From NCBI RefSeq assembly GCF_000737315.1, contig NZ_JMCB01000008.1, forward strand, positions 186,001-250,000: DNA of 64,000 bases. The letters run 5' to 3'. The notes under the pieces were generated by a model. The model searched no databases. It saw only the letters and a program-made list of their open reading frames with translations, and was not told where the DNA came from. The translations under genes were made by a program, and so were the position numbers. Shown here piece after piece: positions 37,203 to 41,270 of this stretch. This stretch comes from Hyalangium minutum (GTDB lineage Bacteria > Myxococcota > Myxococcia > Myxococcales > Myxococcaceae). Position 1 is the first letter of the stretch; each line of letters starts with the position of its first letter.

Positions 37203-37778
37203 GTGGGTTCCTCGGAGGAACTGGCACAGTGGGTTCGGCGGGCCGCCGGTGGGGATGCGTCCGCCTTCGGTGAGCTGTACCGGCGCACAAGGCCCCAGGT
37301 GGCCCGGCTGACCGCCGGGTTCGCCACGCTGGACGCAGATGAGGTGGAAGACGTGATTCAGGAGACCTACGTCCGAGCGTTCAAGGCGCTCCCCCGGCTC
37401 AAGGACGCCACGGCGTTCGAGGCGTGGCTCCTGGCCATTGCCCGCAACCGGGCCCGCACCCGCCTGGAGCGCAAGAGCCACCTGCGGCGAATGGAAGAGG
37501 AGACCCCGGATCCCCAGCCCGAGGCCGTCCCTCCCCTCCCCGAGGCCCTCCAGGTGGAGCGGGACATTGCCGAGGTGCGTCAGCTCATCGCCGAGCTGCC
37601 CGAGGGCGAGGAAAAGAAGACCGTCCAGCTCTTCTACTTGGAGGGAGAGCTGTCCGCGCGGGAGATCGCCGAGAAGCTCGGCGTCGGCAAGAGCGCGGTG
37701 ACCATGCGCCTGGAACGGTTCAGGGCGCGCATCAAGCGGAAGCTGCTCCAGCGCGTGCTCGCCGGACGGTGGGAGTGA
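37203..37778 (+). CDS. ECF RNA polymerase sigma factor
   Basis: GD..AFGELY, EDVIQET, FEAWL..IARN (region 2); EIAEKLG...VTMRL (region 4); GTG with GGAGG RBS. Confidence 0.93.
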   Translation: MGSSEELAQWVRRAAGGDASAFGELYRRTRPQVARLTAGFATLDADEVEDVIQETYVRAFKALPRLKDATAFEAWLLAIARNRARTRLERKSHLRRMEEETPDPQPEAVPPLPEALQVERDIAEVRQLIAELPEGEEKKTVQLFYLEGELSAREIAEKLGVGKSAVTMRLERFRARIKRKLLQRVLAGRWE

Positions 37779-37782
37779 TGTC

Positions 37783-38565
37783 ATGAAGCACCTCGATGCG
37801 CAGGCGCTCAGCGCGCTCGCCGCCAAGGACCCCGAGGCGGTGGCCTACTTCCGGGAGCACCTGGCCTCCCCCTGTGACACCTGCGAGGAGTTCCTTGCCC
37901 AGTCCACCACCGATGGCCTCGATGGCCAGGTCGACGCCCTCCTGCTCGCCCTCGCTCCTCGCAAGGCCGCCGCCCACGACGAAGTGGGCTGGATGCGCCT
38001 CAAGCGACGCCTGCGCACTTCTGCCCACGCCGGGCGCTGGGTCGGCGCGGCCGCGGCGCTGGCAGCCTGTCTGCTGGCGGTGGTGCTGGTACCCAAGCTG
38101 GTGAAGGCGCCGGAGCAGGCGCAACCCTGGAATGGGGTGAAGGGCTCCAGCCGCATTGCGCTGGAGCTGGCAGCGGTGGCCCGGGGCTCGGACGGACAGT
38201 TACGGCGGCTGGATCAGGGGGCGGCGGTGCCCTCGGAGGATGTGCTCCTGCTGCGCTACCACGCCACCGAGGCGGGCAGCGCCCTGCTCTTCCAGCAGAC
38301 GGGAGACAGGGAACCCGAGCTGCTCGGCAGCTTCCAGCTGGAGGCGGGGACGCATGATCTCGAGGGCCCGCAGGGGCTGGCAGGGGTGAGCCTCTCGGGC
38401 GAAGAGGGCCCTGTCACCCTGTGGCTGGTGGCCACTGCCGCGGGTGAGCCGCTGTCGCCCAATGAAGTCCAAGGGGTGCTTGCGGGCAGCAAGGGCCACG
38501 GGGAGAACCCGCTGTCCACCGCACGGTTCGACGTCTTCGTTCAGACCGGTCAGAATCCCCGCTGA
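37783..38565 (+). CDS. Zinc-finger anti-sigma-like membrane protein
   Basis: HLASPCDTC (ZAS-like), TM helix LAACLLAVVLV, periplasmic beta domain. Confidence 0.78.
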   Translation: MKHLDAQALSALAAKDPEAVAYFREHLASPCDTCEEFLAQSTTDGLDGQVDALLLALAPRKAAAHDEVGWMRLKRRLRTSAHAGRWVGAAAALAACLLAVVLVPKLVKAPEQAQPWNGVKGSSRIALELAAVARGSDGQLRRLDQGAAVPSEDVLLLRYHATEAGSALLFQQTGDREPELLGSFQLEAGTHDLEGPQGLAGVSLSGEEGPVTLWLVATAAGEPLSPNEVQGVLAGSKGHGENPLSTARFDVFVQTGQNPR

Positions 38566-38568
38566 CCC

Positions 38569-40209
38569 GTGAAGCGCCTGCTCCTCATGTTGCTCGGGGC
38601 CCTCGTGGCCTGCGCGAGCCCCTCGGCCCAGGAGAAGGGCGGCCTGGTGCCGCTCCGACTCGATGAGGCGGCCCTCTCCACCGCCTATGCGCCCCGGCGC
38701 ATCGCCCTGTTGGTGGGCATCTCCGAGTTCCAGGATCCCCAGTGGCGCAACCTGCGCTACTCCGAGAAGGACGCCACGGATCTGGCCGCCGCGCTGAAGG
38801 ATCCGGCGCGCGGGCATTTCGATCAGGTGCGCATGCTCACGCGCCCCGAGCAGACGACGCGCGCGGCCATCCTCTCCGCGCTGCACGAGCTGCAGCGGGA
38901 GGCCACCCGGCCGGATGACGTGGTGGTCGTCTACTTCTCCGCGCACGGCACGCTGGCGAGGGACGGACAGGGCGAGCTGAGGCGCTACCTCGTCACCCAG
39001 GATGCTTCGTACCGCTCCATCTCGCAGACGGCCCTCTCCATGGACGTGCTGAAGGCGGAGTTCGACAAGCTCCCCAGCCGGCGGCGGCTGCTGGTGCTGG
39101 CCACCTGCCACAGCGGCAGCGGCAAGTCGCTGCTGCCCAAGGAGCTGGAGGCGGAGCTGACGGGCATCAAGTCCGGCTTCTACGCGCGCCCCCTGGAGGA
39201 GTCGAGCCGGGCTTCCATGGTGTTCGCCGCCTGCGACTGGGGCGAGACGGCCCGCGAGGACGAGGGGCTGCGCAACGACATCTACACGTACTTCCTCATT
39301 GAAGGGCTCAACGGCAAGGCGGACCGGAACATGGACGGCGCCGTCACCGCCACCGAGGCGCATGACTACGCGCGCCGCCGCACCTTCGCTTTCACCCAGG
39401 GGCGCCAGCGCCCGTCGGCGGAGATCCTCGAGGTGGGCGCGGATCCGGTGGTGCTCTCCGGCAGCATCAACCGCACGGGGCGCCCGGAGCTGTTCTCCTA
39501 CAACCCGCGGCTGGACGGCTTCACCCTCAAGGTGGACGGAGAGCCGCGCACGGAGCTGCCCGGCGGCACGGCGGTGGTCCCTGGCAAGCGCACCGTGGAG
39601 CTGACCAAGGGCGACGCGGTGCTGGTGCGGCGGGAGATCGACATGACCGCCGGCGAGCGCCTGCCTTTGGAGGAGCTGCTGTCGGACACCTTCCCGCGAC
39701 GCTCGCTCGCGCTGGTGGGCGGAGTGTTCTCCTTCGTGGACGGCAAGAGCCGCGCCGAGCTGCTGCCCGCCTCGCCCGAGGTGGCCGCGGTGCTGCGGCT
39801 GGAGGACAAGCCGCTGCAGGACTTCGCGCTGCTCCTGGATGTAGGCGGCATCCGAGGCCAGCACCGCCTGAAACTCGCGCCCGGCTCCGAGGTGCCCTTT
39901 GGCTACACCCGCCTCTCCGTGGGCGTGGGCATGCCGTATTTGTGGCGGTGGGACCGGCTGTCACTTTATGCAGGACCGCGTGTGGCCGCTCTCTACCTCC
40001 GGCGGTCCTTCCAAGTGGAGGCATTCACCGGTGGGCAGAACTACTTCACCGTGAGCCCGGGCGTAGTGGGTGGCATGGTGTGGCGGCTGGGTGACAGGCT
40101 GGAGCTGACCTCTCAGGCCCAGGTCATGCTCACGTACGTGGTGGTGGACGGACAAGGACAGGCGGTGGGGTTCACCGGCGGCTGGGCAGGCATGGGGTAC
40201 CGGTTCTGA
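38569..40209 (+). CDS. Caspase-family (peptidase C14) lipoprotein with C-terminal beta-barrel-like region
   Basis: Lipobox LVAC; ALLVGI, YFSAHG (His), LATCHSG (Cys), FTYFL-like IYTYFLIEGL; amphipathic strands ending ...GMGYRF. Confidence 0.88.
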   Translation: MKRLLLMLLGALVACASPSAQEKGGLVPLRLDEAALSTAYAPRRIALLVGISEFQDPQWRNLRYSEKDATDLAAALKDPARGHFDQVRMLTRPEQTTRAAILSALHELQREATRPDDVVVVYFSAHGTLARDGQGELRRYLVTQDASYRSISQTALSMDVLKAEFDKLPSRRRLLVLATCHSGSGKSLLPKELEAELTGIKSGFYARPLEESSRASMVFAACDWGETAREDEGLRNDIYTYFLIEGLNGKADRNMDGAVTATEAHDYARRRTFAFTQGRQRPSAEILEVGADPVVLSGSINRTGRPELFSYNPRLDGFTLKVDGEPRTELPGGTAVVPGKRTVELTKGDAVLVRREIDMTAGERLPLEELLSDTFPRRSLALVGGVFSFVDGKSRAELLPASPEVAAVLRLEDKPLQDFALLLDVGGIRGQHRLKLAPGSEVPFGYTRLSVGVGMPYLWRWDRLSLYAGPRVAALYLRRSFQVEAFTGGQNYFTVSPGVVGGMVWRLGDRLELTSQAQVMLTYVVVDGQGQAVGFTGGWAGMGYRF

Positions 40210-41270
40210 TGCGCCAGACACTGCACATCGCGATGGTGGTCGGGCTGGCGCTCGGCGCGCTCGGGTGCGGAGAGCTGGAGAACGCCCCGTTCCGCCTCGG
40301 CACGGTGCAAGGCCGCCTCACGGAGAGCGATGCATCCGTGGCCCTGGTCGCCGTCATGGGAGCCCCCGAGCTGCGCAGCACCCTGGCGGCGGATGGGAGC
40401 TTCAAGCTCGAGCAGGTCCCCGCGGGGCAGGCCGAGCTGTTCATCATCGCCTCGGCGAGCAAGGCCCTGCGCGTGTCGCTGATCGTCCAGGGCGGGCAGT
40501 CCGTCACCGTAGGCTCGCTGACCCCCAAGGAGGCCAGCTTCCTCGCGTTGCGGCTGAAGGCTCCCTCGCACGAGCCCGTGGAGCAAGCGCAGGTGACGCT
40601 GGTGGGCACCCCCATGCTGCCGCTGCAGCCGGACGAGCATGGGCGCCTGAGCGTGGGGCCACTTCCGGATGGCTGCTACACGCTGAGCATCTCCGCCCCT
40701 GGCTTCCCCGATGTGGCGTCCGAGACATGCTTGGGCTCCGGAGAGACCCAAGAGGTGAAGGTAAACCTCCCCGCCCCGAGCAAGAAGTGCGAGCAGACGG
40801 GCTGCTCGCAAGGCTTCGTCTGCGCGCAGAACGGCCGGTGCGTGGAGTGCCTGGACGACTCGCACTGCGTCTCCGGGCTCTCCTGCCGCGGCATGCGCTG
40901 CGAGGGCGAGGCCCCCGTCTGCACCTCCTGCGAGGGGGACTGGCAGTGCGGCTCCAAGGCGAGTTGCCAGGAGTTCGCCGATGGCTCCAAGGCCTGCGTG
41001 ACGTCCTGCGCGAACGCCAATCAGTGCGAGGATGGCTTCACCTGCCAAGCGGGCCGATGCCTGCCCGACGAGGCCCAGTTCAATGGCTGCCCGGCATACG
41101 TCAAGCTGGGTACCTCGTGCGACAACCCGGTGCTGTGCCGGAACCAGGGGCTCGTCAACGGGCTCTGCGTGGGAGGCCGCTGCACCATCCCATGCGACAC
41201 CGGCCGGGTGTGCCCGGAGGAGTTCTCCTGCGAGAACACCAGCGACGGGCGCGTGTGCATCTCCGAGTAG
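40209..41270 (+). CDS. Lipoprotein with carboxypeptidase-regulatory-like domains and Cys-rich repeats
   Basis: Lipobox ALGC; TGATG overlap with the caspase; >20 Cys in the C-terminal third. Confidence 0.85.
   Translation: MRQTLHIAMVVGLALGALGCGELENAPFRLGTVQGRLTESDASVALVAVMGAPELRSTLAADGSFKLEQVPAGQAELFIIASASKALRVSLIVQGGQSVTVGSLTPKEASFLALRLKAPSHEPVEQAQVTLVGTPMLPLQPDEHGRLSVGPLPDGCYTLSISAPGFPDVASETCLGSGETQEVKVNLPAPSKKCEQTGCSQGFVCAQNGRCVECLDDSHCVSGLSCRGMRCEGEAPVCTSCEGDWQCGSKASCQEFADGSKACVTSCANANQCEDGFTCQAGRCLPDEAQFNGCPAYVKLGTSCDNPVLCRNQGLVNGLCVGGRCTIPCDTGRVCPEEFSCENTSDGRVCISE

Follow-up and report, generated by a model that had tools for sequence, protein, structure and literature searches.

In a 64-kb window of Hyalangium minutum DNA (~68% G+C), which is the whole stretch that was analyzed here and whose proteins have their nearest matches in Hyalangium and other Myxococcaceae/Archangiaceae, four co-oriented open reading frames (ORFs) lie on the + strand at 37203-41270, with 4, 3 and -1 nt between them. 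Their products are a sigma factor of the extracytoplasmic function (ECF) type, its predicted anti-sigma factor, a caspase of the C14 family and a lipoprotein (the product of gene 4). An earlier reading of the stretch, made from the letters alone and referred to below as the original prediction, had reported the same four genes with the same spacing, and the ORF listing agrees with it. It had further proposed a signalling system in which the lipoprotein senses a surface cue, the caspase cleaves the anti-sigma factor and the sigma factor is released. The features at the locus are as follows (genes from the ORF listing).

37203..37778, + strand: sigma gene (alternative upstream start at 37149)
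37783..38565, + strand: anti-sigma gene
38569..40209, + strand: caspase gene
40209..41270, + strand: lipoprotein gene (gene 4)
41270..41293, strand not applicable: hairpin between convergent stop codons (RNA fold -22.5 kcal/mol, z = -2.75)

The hairpin at 41270..41293 probably marks the end of the operon. A scan of the operon for internal sigma-70 promoters and intrinsic terminators gave nothing of note.

A four-gene unit conserved across myxobacteria

To compare gene neighbourhoods, 80 genome loci were fetched after a profile search with the caspase, and all neighbours in the window were run against them by tblastn. Judged by record title, the loci are from Myxococcota, bar a few whose labels are loose or seem to be wrong, 'Comamonas sp. 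KCTC 72670' (L015/L062) among them. The order and spacing of the sigma, anti-sigma, caspase and lipoprotein genes are kept in essentially every locus with enough flanking sequence (~80/80), and the order persists down to 48% caspase identity, in Anaeromyxobacter. Only close relatives have flanks in common: on the upstream side serC and a gene resembling that of chalcone isomerase, on the downstream side an operon of the DUF2063/MbnB type. Six loci (L061-L065 and L068) represent a second, paralogous cassette of the MXAN_6681-6684 type, with a caspase ~50% identical, in Myxococcus and Corallococcus, where the orthologue is also present. Since gene order is conserved while the flanks change, and since the whole cassette has a paralogue, the cassette has been inherited and duplicated as a unit. 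The caspase stays with the anti-sigma factor in every such duplication.

A profile of the anti-sigma factor was also searched against 1.84 billion representative proteins and gave 234 clusters at 50% identity. Nearly all of these are 220-280 aa long, indicating that the architecture of the family is constant. For four distant homologues, the gene upstream is a sigma gene in 4/4 cases and the gene downstream codes for a C14 caspase in 3/3 readable cases. The neighbourhood survey that the original prediction had suggested as a check thus finds the four genes co-conserved, with the sigma and caspase genes also next to distant anti-sigma homologues. We conclude that the four-gene unit is real, not a product of chance, and conserved across myxobacteria.

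Some variation is seen around this core. A spacer of 66-104 nt parts the anti-sigma gene from the caspase gene in the Anaeromyxobacter clade (L066, L070, L072, L073, L077 and L079). A fifth gene directly follows the lipoprotein gene in Myxococcus, Archangium and Pyxidicoccus and codes for a 927-aa PKD/immunoglobulin (Ig)-like protein (for example at 8773-11556 of L081, from M. virescens, and likewise in loci of the L007-L044 type); it is missing from the window and from the other Hyalangium loci.

Myxococcus xanthus has four ECF-caspase operons. Two of them, MXAN_4949-4953, the orthologue of the window locus, and MXAN_6681-6684, the paralogue, appear in a supplementary table of a 2012 metacaspase survey (Asplund-Samuelsson et al., PMC3501461), in which MXAN_4949-4953 are listed as sigma factor, transmembrane (TM) protein, metacaspase, lipoprotein and PKD protein. 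The survey thus records the same family, but as operon membership only, with no barrel, anti-sigma assignment, cleavage candidate, promoters or mechanism. For MXAN_4949-4953, 6681-6684, 7214-7216 and 7456, the literature yielded a cluster-boundary mention and a swarming mutant panel only, and no functional study of sigma-metacaspase operons was found in it. The statement of the original prediction that no characterized system has this layout holds, with the addition that the operons had already been tabulated descriptively.

Predicted architecture of the encoded proteins

The sigma factor (191 aa) comprises sigma2 and sigma4 regions without an extension and is an ECF (group IV) protein, as had been predicted. 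It matches the Pfam families Sigma70_r2 (PF04542), Sigma70_ECF (PF07638) and r4_2 (PF08281), as well as TIGR02937 of NCBIfam at 82 bits against a cut-off of 42.9; none of the group-specific NCBIfam equivalogs was matched at its cut-off. The GTG start at 37203 is at a position conserved across genera, and sigma identity in related loci is 51-90%.

The anti-sigma factor is a single-pass protein of 260 aa. Its translation contains the motif H26-LASP-C31-DT-C34 (H-x4-C-x2-C) ahead of the TM segment, and an AlphaFold2 model shows four N-terminal helices, a TM helix (from ~87 to 102-106), a disordered linker (104-121, predicted local distance difference test (pLDDT) <50) and a confidently modelled Ig-like beta-sandwich (127-254). 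The membrane protein with an HxxxxCxxC motif and a periplasmic domain in the original prediction was thus correctly described. Residues H3, H26, C31 and C34 fit a ChrR-like His/His/Cys/Cys zinc site and are putative ligands; the spacer is one residue longer than in the H-x3-C-x2-C motif of zinc-binding anti-sigma factors. The Pfam family zf-HC2 was not matched, and a Pfam search with 35 members of the family returned nothing even at E 10. No PDB sequence was matched in a profile search with the anti-sigma factor, and Foldseek of the sandwich returned generic Ig-like folds only. The idea that the periplasmic domain is DUF4384 or another caspase-associated Pfam domain was rejected on these grounds. 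A sequence link from the anti-sigma or caspase profiles to solved structures was likewise sought, and the sole match was a marginal one, to TbMCA2 around the catalytic dyad.

Residue conservation was counted in 125 full-length representatives of the anti-sigma family. The putative zinc ligands are nearly invariant (H3, 123/125; H26, 124/125; C31, 124/125; C34, 123/125), and so is a Lys-Gly pair in the linker: K120 is present in 124/125 representatives and G121 in 117/125, with Ala in a further 5. In a separate cross-clade alignment (A4), the invariant residues are H3, L4, H26, C31, C34, L46, D51, K120 and G189, K120 being one of only two that are periplasmic. The pair sits 10-25 variable residues past the membrane helix, with the consensus (D/E)-G-[LVI]-K-G, and is encoded as follows.

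38140..38145, + strand: codons of Lys120-Gly121, candidate site-1 cleavage site (conservation, disordered linker)

Since these residues are conserved to the level of the ligands within a disordered and otherwise variable linker, K120-G121 is most simply read as a candidate processing or recognition site.

The caspase (546 aa) carries a lipobox, L-V-A-C15, and matches Peptidase_C14 (PF00656) over residues 43-283 with 59.7 bits (cut-off 21.4; E 4.5e-16). Its translation contains the dyad motifs SAHG (124-127) and TCHSG (179-183) and ends in GYRF. The nearest NCBIfam subfamily is caspase_w_EACC1 (NF047832), and it is nearest only, as the score of 99.4 bits is below the cut-off of 140. An AlphaFold2 model built on a 47-sequence alignment (mean pLDDT 78.6) contains a caspase fold (~43-286), an Ig-like domain (~295-366) and a barrel (~378-546). 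In the barrel, modelled at pLDDT ~90, DSSP divides residues 378-545 into about nine strand segments, of which one is short; we read them as eight TM strands because the Foldseek matches are eight-stranded barrels. Against the PDB, the N-terminal part of the model matches MALT1 (caspase and caspase-Ig3, E ~4e-11), yeast metacaspases and insect caspase-1; the E values for MALT1 and the metacaspases are 1e-11 to 1e-6. The C-terminal ~170 residues match OmpA-TM, Ail, NspA, OmpX and OprF-N with E values of 2e-8 to 4e-6 and target TM-scores of 0.54-0.72 (0.64-0.72 to 9fzc, 3qrc, 1p4t and 1qj9); no outer-membrane protein family of Pfam was matched by the barrel. MALT1 and the barrels OmpA-TM, OmpX, Ail and NspA are the best structural matches to the N-terminal and C-terminal halves, respectively, and in MALT1, too, the caspase domain is followed by an Ig-like domain; sequence identity to these structures is only 10-17%, and the domain arrangement is not comparable (root mean square deviation ~25 Å over the full length). 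A fusion of a caspase to an OmpA-like barrel has no counterpart among the solved structures searched, and no protein is known to unite two such halves.

Conservation was counted in 81 caspase sequences from all clades. The lipobox Cys15 is present in 80/81, whereas His126 and Cys180 with the flanking S-x-H-G and C-H-S-G motifs are present in all 81, and the C-terminal G-[YW]-R-F motif in at least 76. Both the caspase and the gene 4 product are predicted lipoproteins by their lipoboxes. These features suggest that the caspase is an active cysteine protease. They also suggest that it is lipidated and that the barrel at its C-terminus inserts it in the outer membrane. Because an even-stranded barrel places both termini on the periplasmic side, the catalytic and Ig-like domains would lie there too. 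The original prediction of a lipoprotein with an intact caspase dyad and a linker domain is in line with these data, and its guess that amphipathic strands running to YRF form a barrel is matched by the model.

Three lysines, K23, K186 and K201, are also present in 81/81 caspases. Residues 182-228, which follow the catalytic Cys, are modelled as disordered although they hardly vary; they hold K186-S and the sequence A-G-[ILV]-K201-[SAG]-G, while the N-terminal tether contains an invariant E-K23-G-G-L-V. Dipeptides of Lys and a small residue are thus found in disordered parts of the protein (K23-G, K186-S and K201-S/A/G; regions 38629-38652, residues 21-28, and 39157-39183, residues 197-205). 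The G-[LVI]-K-G sequence of the anti-sigma linker resembles both the caspase loop around K201 and the N-terminal E-K23-G-G. It is possible that K23, K186 and K201 are autoprocessing sites; a cut at K23 would release the caspase from its lipid anchor and leave the barrel anchor in place.

The gene 4 product (353 aa) starts with the lipobox A-L-G-C20, whose Cys opens a conserved C-G-x-L-[ED]-N-x-P, and consists of two prealbumin/CarboxypepD_reg-like domains (~30-190) and a variable Cys-rich tail (~193-353). It matches PF13620 (CarboxypepD_reg) and, weakly, TIGR04201 (Myxo_Cys_RPT). Common to all clades are the lipobox, the start motif, the N-terminal ~170-180 aa and one Cys pair; the number of Cys residues ranges from 3-6 to ~30. 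Both the window protein and those of Anaeromyxobacter have a Cys-rich tail (~30 Cys). Some Archangium proteins have a much shorter one, an acidic, Asp/Gly-rich tail takes its place in the paralogous cassette, and in another clade there is almost none. Of the Cys-rich prealbumin-like lipoprotein in the original prediction, the prealbumin-like domains, the lipobox and a weak likeness to Myxo_Cys_RPT stand; the Cys-rich tail is not a conserved property.

Promoter-like motifs and neighbouring genes

Two copies of a promoter-like motif, CGTGTGGCC-N16-GGTC, are present, one upstream of the sigma gene and the other within that of the caspase.

37167..37192, + strand: P1, GTGGCC-N16-GGTC, 36 nt before the sigma start and ending 10 nt upstream of it
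39982..40007, + strand: P2, GTGGCC-N16-GGTC, within the caspase gene where it codes for the barrel, ~200 nt upstream of the start of gene 4

These are the only two exact matches to GTGGCC-N16-GGTC in the 64-kb window, where 0.42 would be expected, and both positions recur in ~45/55 full-length loci. P1, which is often extended to GCGTGTGGCC, is conserved between genera in loci of clade 1, where it sits at about -36. Its offsets from the start include values not divisible by 3 (-35, -37, -26 and others), and since these fall out of frame P1 is taken to be non-coding. A reading of GTGGCC as the upstream start of a longer sigma factor was rejected for its varying, out-of-frame distance to the start. 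A sigma-54 reading of the TGGCC element was rejected as well, the spacing to TTGC being wrong and TTGC not being conserved. The interval of ~10 nt between P1 and the GTG suggests a leaderless or near-leaderless mRNA.

P2 is built from the caspase codons R471-V472-A473 and R479-S480. Sliding-window synonymous conservation was dropped as a measure, as it is dominated by conserved protein blocks, and a per-codon test was used instead, with the codons ranked in 21 caspase sequences thinned to <85% identity. The P2 codons rank 1, 5, 13 and 19 of 533 for deviation from background usage. Separate counts of the synonymous choices at these positions are as follows.

A473: GCC in 67/68 (background 0.43)
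R471: CGT in 46/74 (background 0.05)
R479: CGG or AGG in 66/78 (background 0.38)
S480: TCC, TCT or TCA in 69/69 (background 0.36)

Judging by codon usage, P2 is maintained by synonymous-codon constraint. P1 and P2 also covary: clade-1 loci have GGTC at both, L058 has neither motif, and in the paralogous cassette the upstream and internal sites both read GTGGCC-N16/17-CTCC. This pattern suggests that P1 autoregulates the operon and that P2 serves the same sigma factor as an internal promoter, giving extra expression of gene 4.

The role of surface sensor that the original prediction had assigned to the Cys-rich lipoprotein is not supported: the tail is variable, the L082 branch has no lipoprotein, and gene 4 has a sigma-type motif, P2, of its own. 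Considering the variability of the tail together with P2, the lipoprotein looks like a regulated output or feedback component and not like a conserved, demonstrated primary sensor.

The genes around the cassette were inspected as well. Convergent with it is an operon of the type that codes for ribosomally synthesized and post-translationally modified peptides (41295-43210, - strand, plus 43232-44005, - strand). It codes for a 93-aa peptide with a signal peptide, repeated GTEASCKG Cys motifs and no Pfam match, and for an MbnB/TglH/ChrH (DUF692) enzyme (E 7e-102) with a DUF2063 partner; a YceI-like gene precedes them. The operon at 41295-44005 looks like a bufferin/MNIO-type locus for a Cys-modified peptide. 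Its M. xanthus equivalents are part of a named 'bacteriocin' cluster, MXAN_4951-4960; the boundary of this antiSMASH-type cluster begins at MXAN_4951 because the MbnB-type genes adjoin. A 590-aa ORF (43965-45737, - strand, from the furthest upstream start) has a HELLH-like zinc-metalloprotease motif in its C-terminal half and no Pfam match at E 0.001. On the other side, at 33371-35314 (- strand), lie two tandem paralogues of trypsin-like serine proteases with lipoprotein-like N-termini and 31% mutual identity. The pair was considered and rejected as part of the unit: it is absent from all 80 related loci and is therefore particular to the neighbourhood in the window genome, outside the cassette. 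Against the PADLOC defence models, the only matches were to a caspase model of generic type (E 3e-12) and, weakly, to a helix-turn-helix model, with no system-specific match, and membership in an anti-phage defence system was rejected accordingly. Neither a CBASS nor a CRISPR regulon was seen near the cassette in the 80 neighbourhoods or by PADLOC, and there were no cas genes.

A caspase as candidate site-1 protease

The locus is best explained as an ECF signalling module that is peculiar to Myxococcota, complete in itself and seemingly autoregulated. Our leading reading of how it works, held tentatively, is that the caspase is a dedicated site-1 protease which would cut the anti-sigma linker at or near K120-G121, with RseP and cytoplasmic proteases finishing the degradation and the sigma factor driving P1 and P2. 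At rest, the anti-sigma factor would hold the sigma factor at the inner membrane through the helical domain with its putative zinc ligands. In response to an envelope cue, the caspase would make the juxtamembrane cut, and RseP (site-2) and the cytoplasmic proteases would then release the sigma factor, by analogy with DdvA (PMC11506125). The freed sigma factor would transcribe its own operon from P1 and, from P2, would add downstream lipoprotein, plus the PKD protein in Myxococcus. The lipoprotein would in that case be an induced partner of the protease, acting as adaptor, feedback inhibitor or effector.

Action of the caspase on the anti-sigma factor is supported indirectly, since K120-G121 is near-invariant and resembles a motif in the caspase's own loop. 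Cutting after basic residues is known from prokaryotic orthocaspases (PMC6426788). The closest precedent is the M. xanthus DdvS/DdvA pair, in which DdvA has a periplasmic CHAT caspase-like domain and becomes RseP-dependent once CHAT is removed (PMC11506125). DdvS/DdvA and the window module are both from Myxococcota and share an ECF sigma factor, a single-pass anti-sigma factor with a zinc motif, a periplasmic His-Cys domain of the caspase superfamily and a proposed site-1 cut of the juxtamembrane linker ahead of RseP. In DdvA, however, anti-sigma factor and CHAT domain (~900 aa with TPR) form one fused protein, and the protease would act in trans within a dimer, whereas the module described here has a separate C14 protein, predicted to be anchored in the outer membrane by lipid and barrel. 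A TPR-CHAT fusion of the DdvA type is not seen in the anti-sigma family: in the window, the periplasmic part is a 130-aa Ig-like sandwich, and the 220-280 aa of the family apply throughout. The type III-E Craspase (Cas7-11 with the TPR-CHAT protein Csx29) cuts Csx30, which holds the ECF-like CASP-sigma (PMC10028731), and has likewise been noted to cut an ECF-sigma-binding protein (PMC11506125). In both cases a caspase-superfamily protease would free an ECF-type sigma factor by cutting its binding partner; Craspase differs in being cytoplasmic and RNA-guided, in using CHAT instead of C14 and in involving no membrane.

Several observations weigh against cleavage by the caspase. The geometry is awkward in the models: the catalytic domain would lie within about one Ig domain of the outer membrane, and K120 lies ~13 residues from the inner-membrane helix. 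The periplasm is ~20-30 nm wide. Specificity is a second point. In metacaspases and in paracaspases such as MALT1, an Asp two residues before the catalytic Cys is in the basic-P1 pocket. The residue at this position (-2) is Ala178 in 81/81 caspases of the present family, as against an Asp in TbMCA2 by alignment; therefore, Lys specificity of the caspase cannot be assumed. The invariant acidic residues D68, D223, E226 and D231 might substitute for the missing pocket Asp. Third, the cassette is not uniform. In L082 (a metagenome-assembled genome of Myxococcota_A UBA2385, 5786-7940), the caspase (512 aa) has a signal peptide and neither the lipobox Cys nor the E-K-G-G motif, and the lipoprotein gene is absent; a 260-nt gap is followed by a gene for a small secreted protein rich in Tyr, Trp and Gly. 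P1 and P2 are both missing from the Anaeromyxobacter clade, and Leu-Ser replaces Val-Ala at the internal site; upstream of the sigma gene this clade has a different conserved element, (C)CGTAGTA(C/A), and regulation of the cassette may differ there. P1 and P2 themselves, as elements read from sequence, are promoter-like motifs only. Finally, co-conservation fits equally well with the caspase as a target of the sigma factor.

This last point leads to the best-surviving alternative, which we consider possible though rather unlikely: an ordinary ECF pair switched by DegS, Prc or a PrsW-like protease together with RseP, with the caspase and the lipoprotein merely in its regulon. The two would then form an inducible, outer-membrane-anchored periplasmic protease system that remodels the envelope or acts in quality control, defence or developmental lysis. 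In keeping with this, all four genes lie behind P1, which looks autoregulatory, the lipoprotein gene has P2 as well, and the gene 4 tail and the extra PKD gene vary as effector modules do. The geometric objection to direct cleavage also counts in its favour, as does the caution of the authors of the ECF classification that conserved neighbours may be regulators or targets (PMC7826278). However, such a scheme leaves unexplained why the anti-sigma linker has a Lys-Gly pair conserved like the zinc ligands and resembling the caspase loop. It is also at odds with retention of the caspase where the lipoprotein is absent and with every duplication retaining the caspase together with the anti-sigma factor.

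An improbable alternative would make the caspase the bait in an alarm for outer-membrane biogenesis. Once assembled in the outer membrane, the caspase would be out of reach of the anti-sigma factor; when Lol or BAM stalls, unassembled caspase near the inner membrane would cut K120-G121, and the freed sigma factor would, via P2 within the caspase gene, also boost the lipoprotein, which would reset the module. The geometric problem would thereby be resolved, and the caspase is unusual in pairing two conserved outer-membrane-targeting signals, a lipobox and a barrel with a terminal aromatic motif. RcsF and NlpE sense mislocalization, and DegS senses the C-terminal YxF of unassembled outer-membrane proteins, so that the logic would have precedent by analogy. 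Nevertheless, this scheme is inferential throughout, a bait under positive autoregulation would drive the signal up further unless damped by gene 4, and the L082-type caspase has no lipobox.

A reverse flow, in which the anti-sigma Ig-like domain and/or the lipoprotein regulate or inhibit a caspase whose substrates are other envelope proteins, with sigma release as a by-product of complex disassembly, is very unlikely. In its favour, the Ig-like domain shows high conservation (in the LLLRYHATEAG block, for example) and is modelled with confidence, and the outer-membrane lipoprotein-protease pairs NlpI-Prc and LbcA-CtpA would offer a precedent by analogy. Against it, no fusion or other architecture ties the domain to caspases, and members of the family all look like anti-sigma factors.

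Returning to the caspase as site-1 protease, the module can be set beside other envelope-signalling systems. As in sigmaE-RseA-DegS-RseP, SigW-RsiW-PrsW and SigV-RsiV, a sigma factor and a single-pass anti-sigma factor are co-transcribed and seemingly autoregulated, and a dedicated site-1 cut on the periplasmic side would be expected to license RseP. In contrast to these systems, the candidate protease is a caspase-fold cysteine protease encoded in the same operon and predicted to sit in the outer instead of the inner membrane. With FecA-FecR-FecI, the module would share a trans-envelope relay of an outer-membrane barrel protein, an inner-membrane anti-sigma factor and an ECF sigma factor. It has neither a TonB-dependent transducer nor a FecR domain, however; its outer-membrane component carries a protease, and the predicted barrel is an 8-stranded anchor and not a 22-strand transporter.

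The predicted fusion of a caspase to an OmpA-like barrel would be a new architecture. A promoter kept by synonymous codons within a coding region, as suggested for P2, carries a lesson for annotation and is relevant to regulon annotation. The proposed mechanism is a testable hypothesis, with one candidate scissile bond, one catalytic Cys, two promoter sites and a tractable organism (MXAN_4949-4953). The components of the module are well defined, and we infer that it carries out regulated proteolysis of an ECF anti-sigma factor in a form with a separate C14 enzyme on the opposite membrane. If this is true, the caspase would be the first dedicated caspase-fold site-1 protease to act in trans on an ECF anti-sigma factor in the periplasm, and, together with DdvA and Craspase, it would make caspase-fold control of ECF sigma factors a general principle, here split across both membranes.

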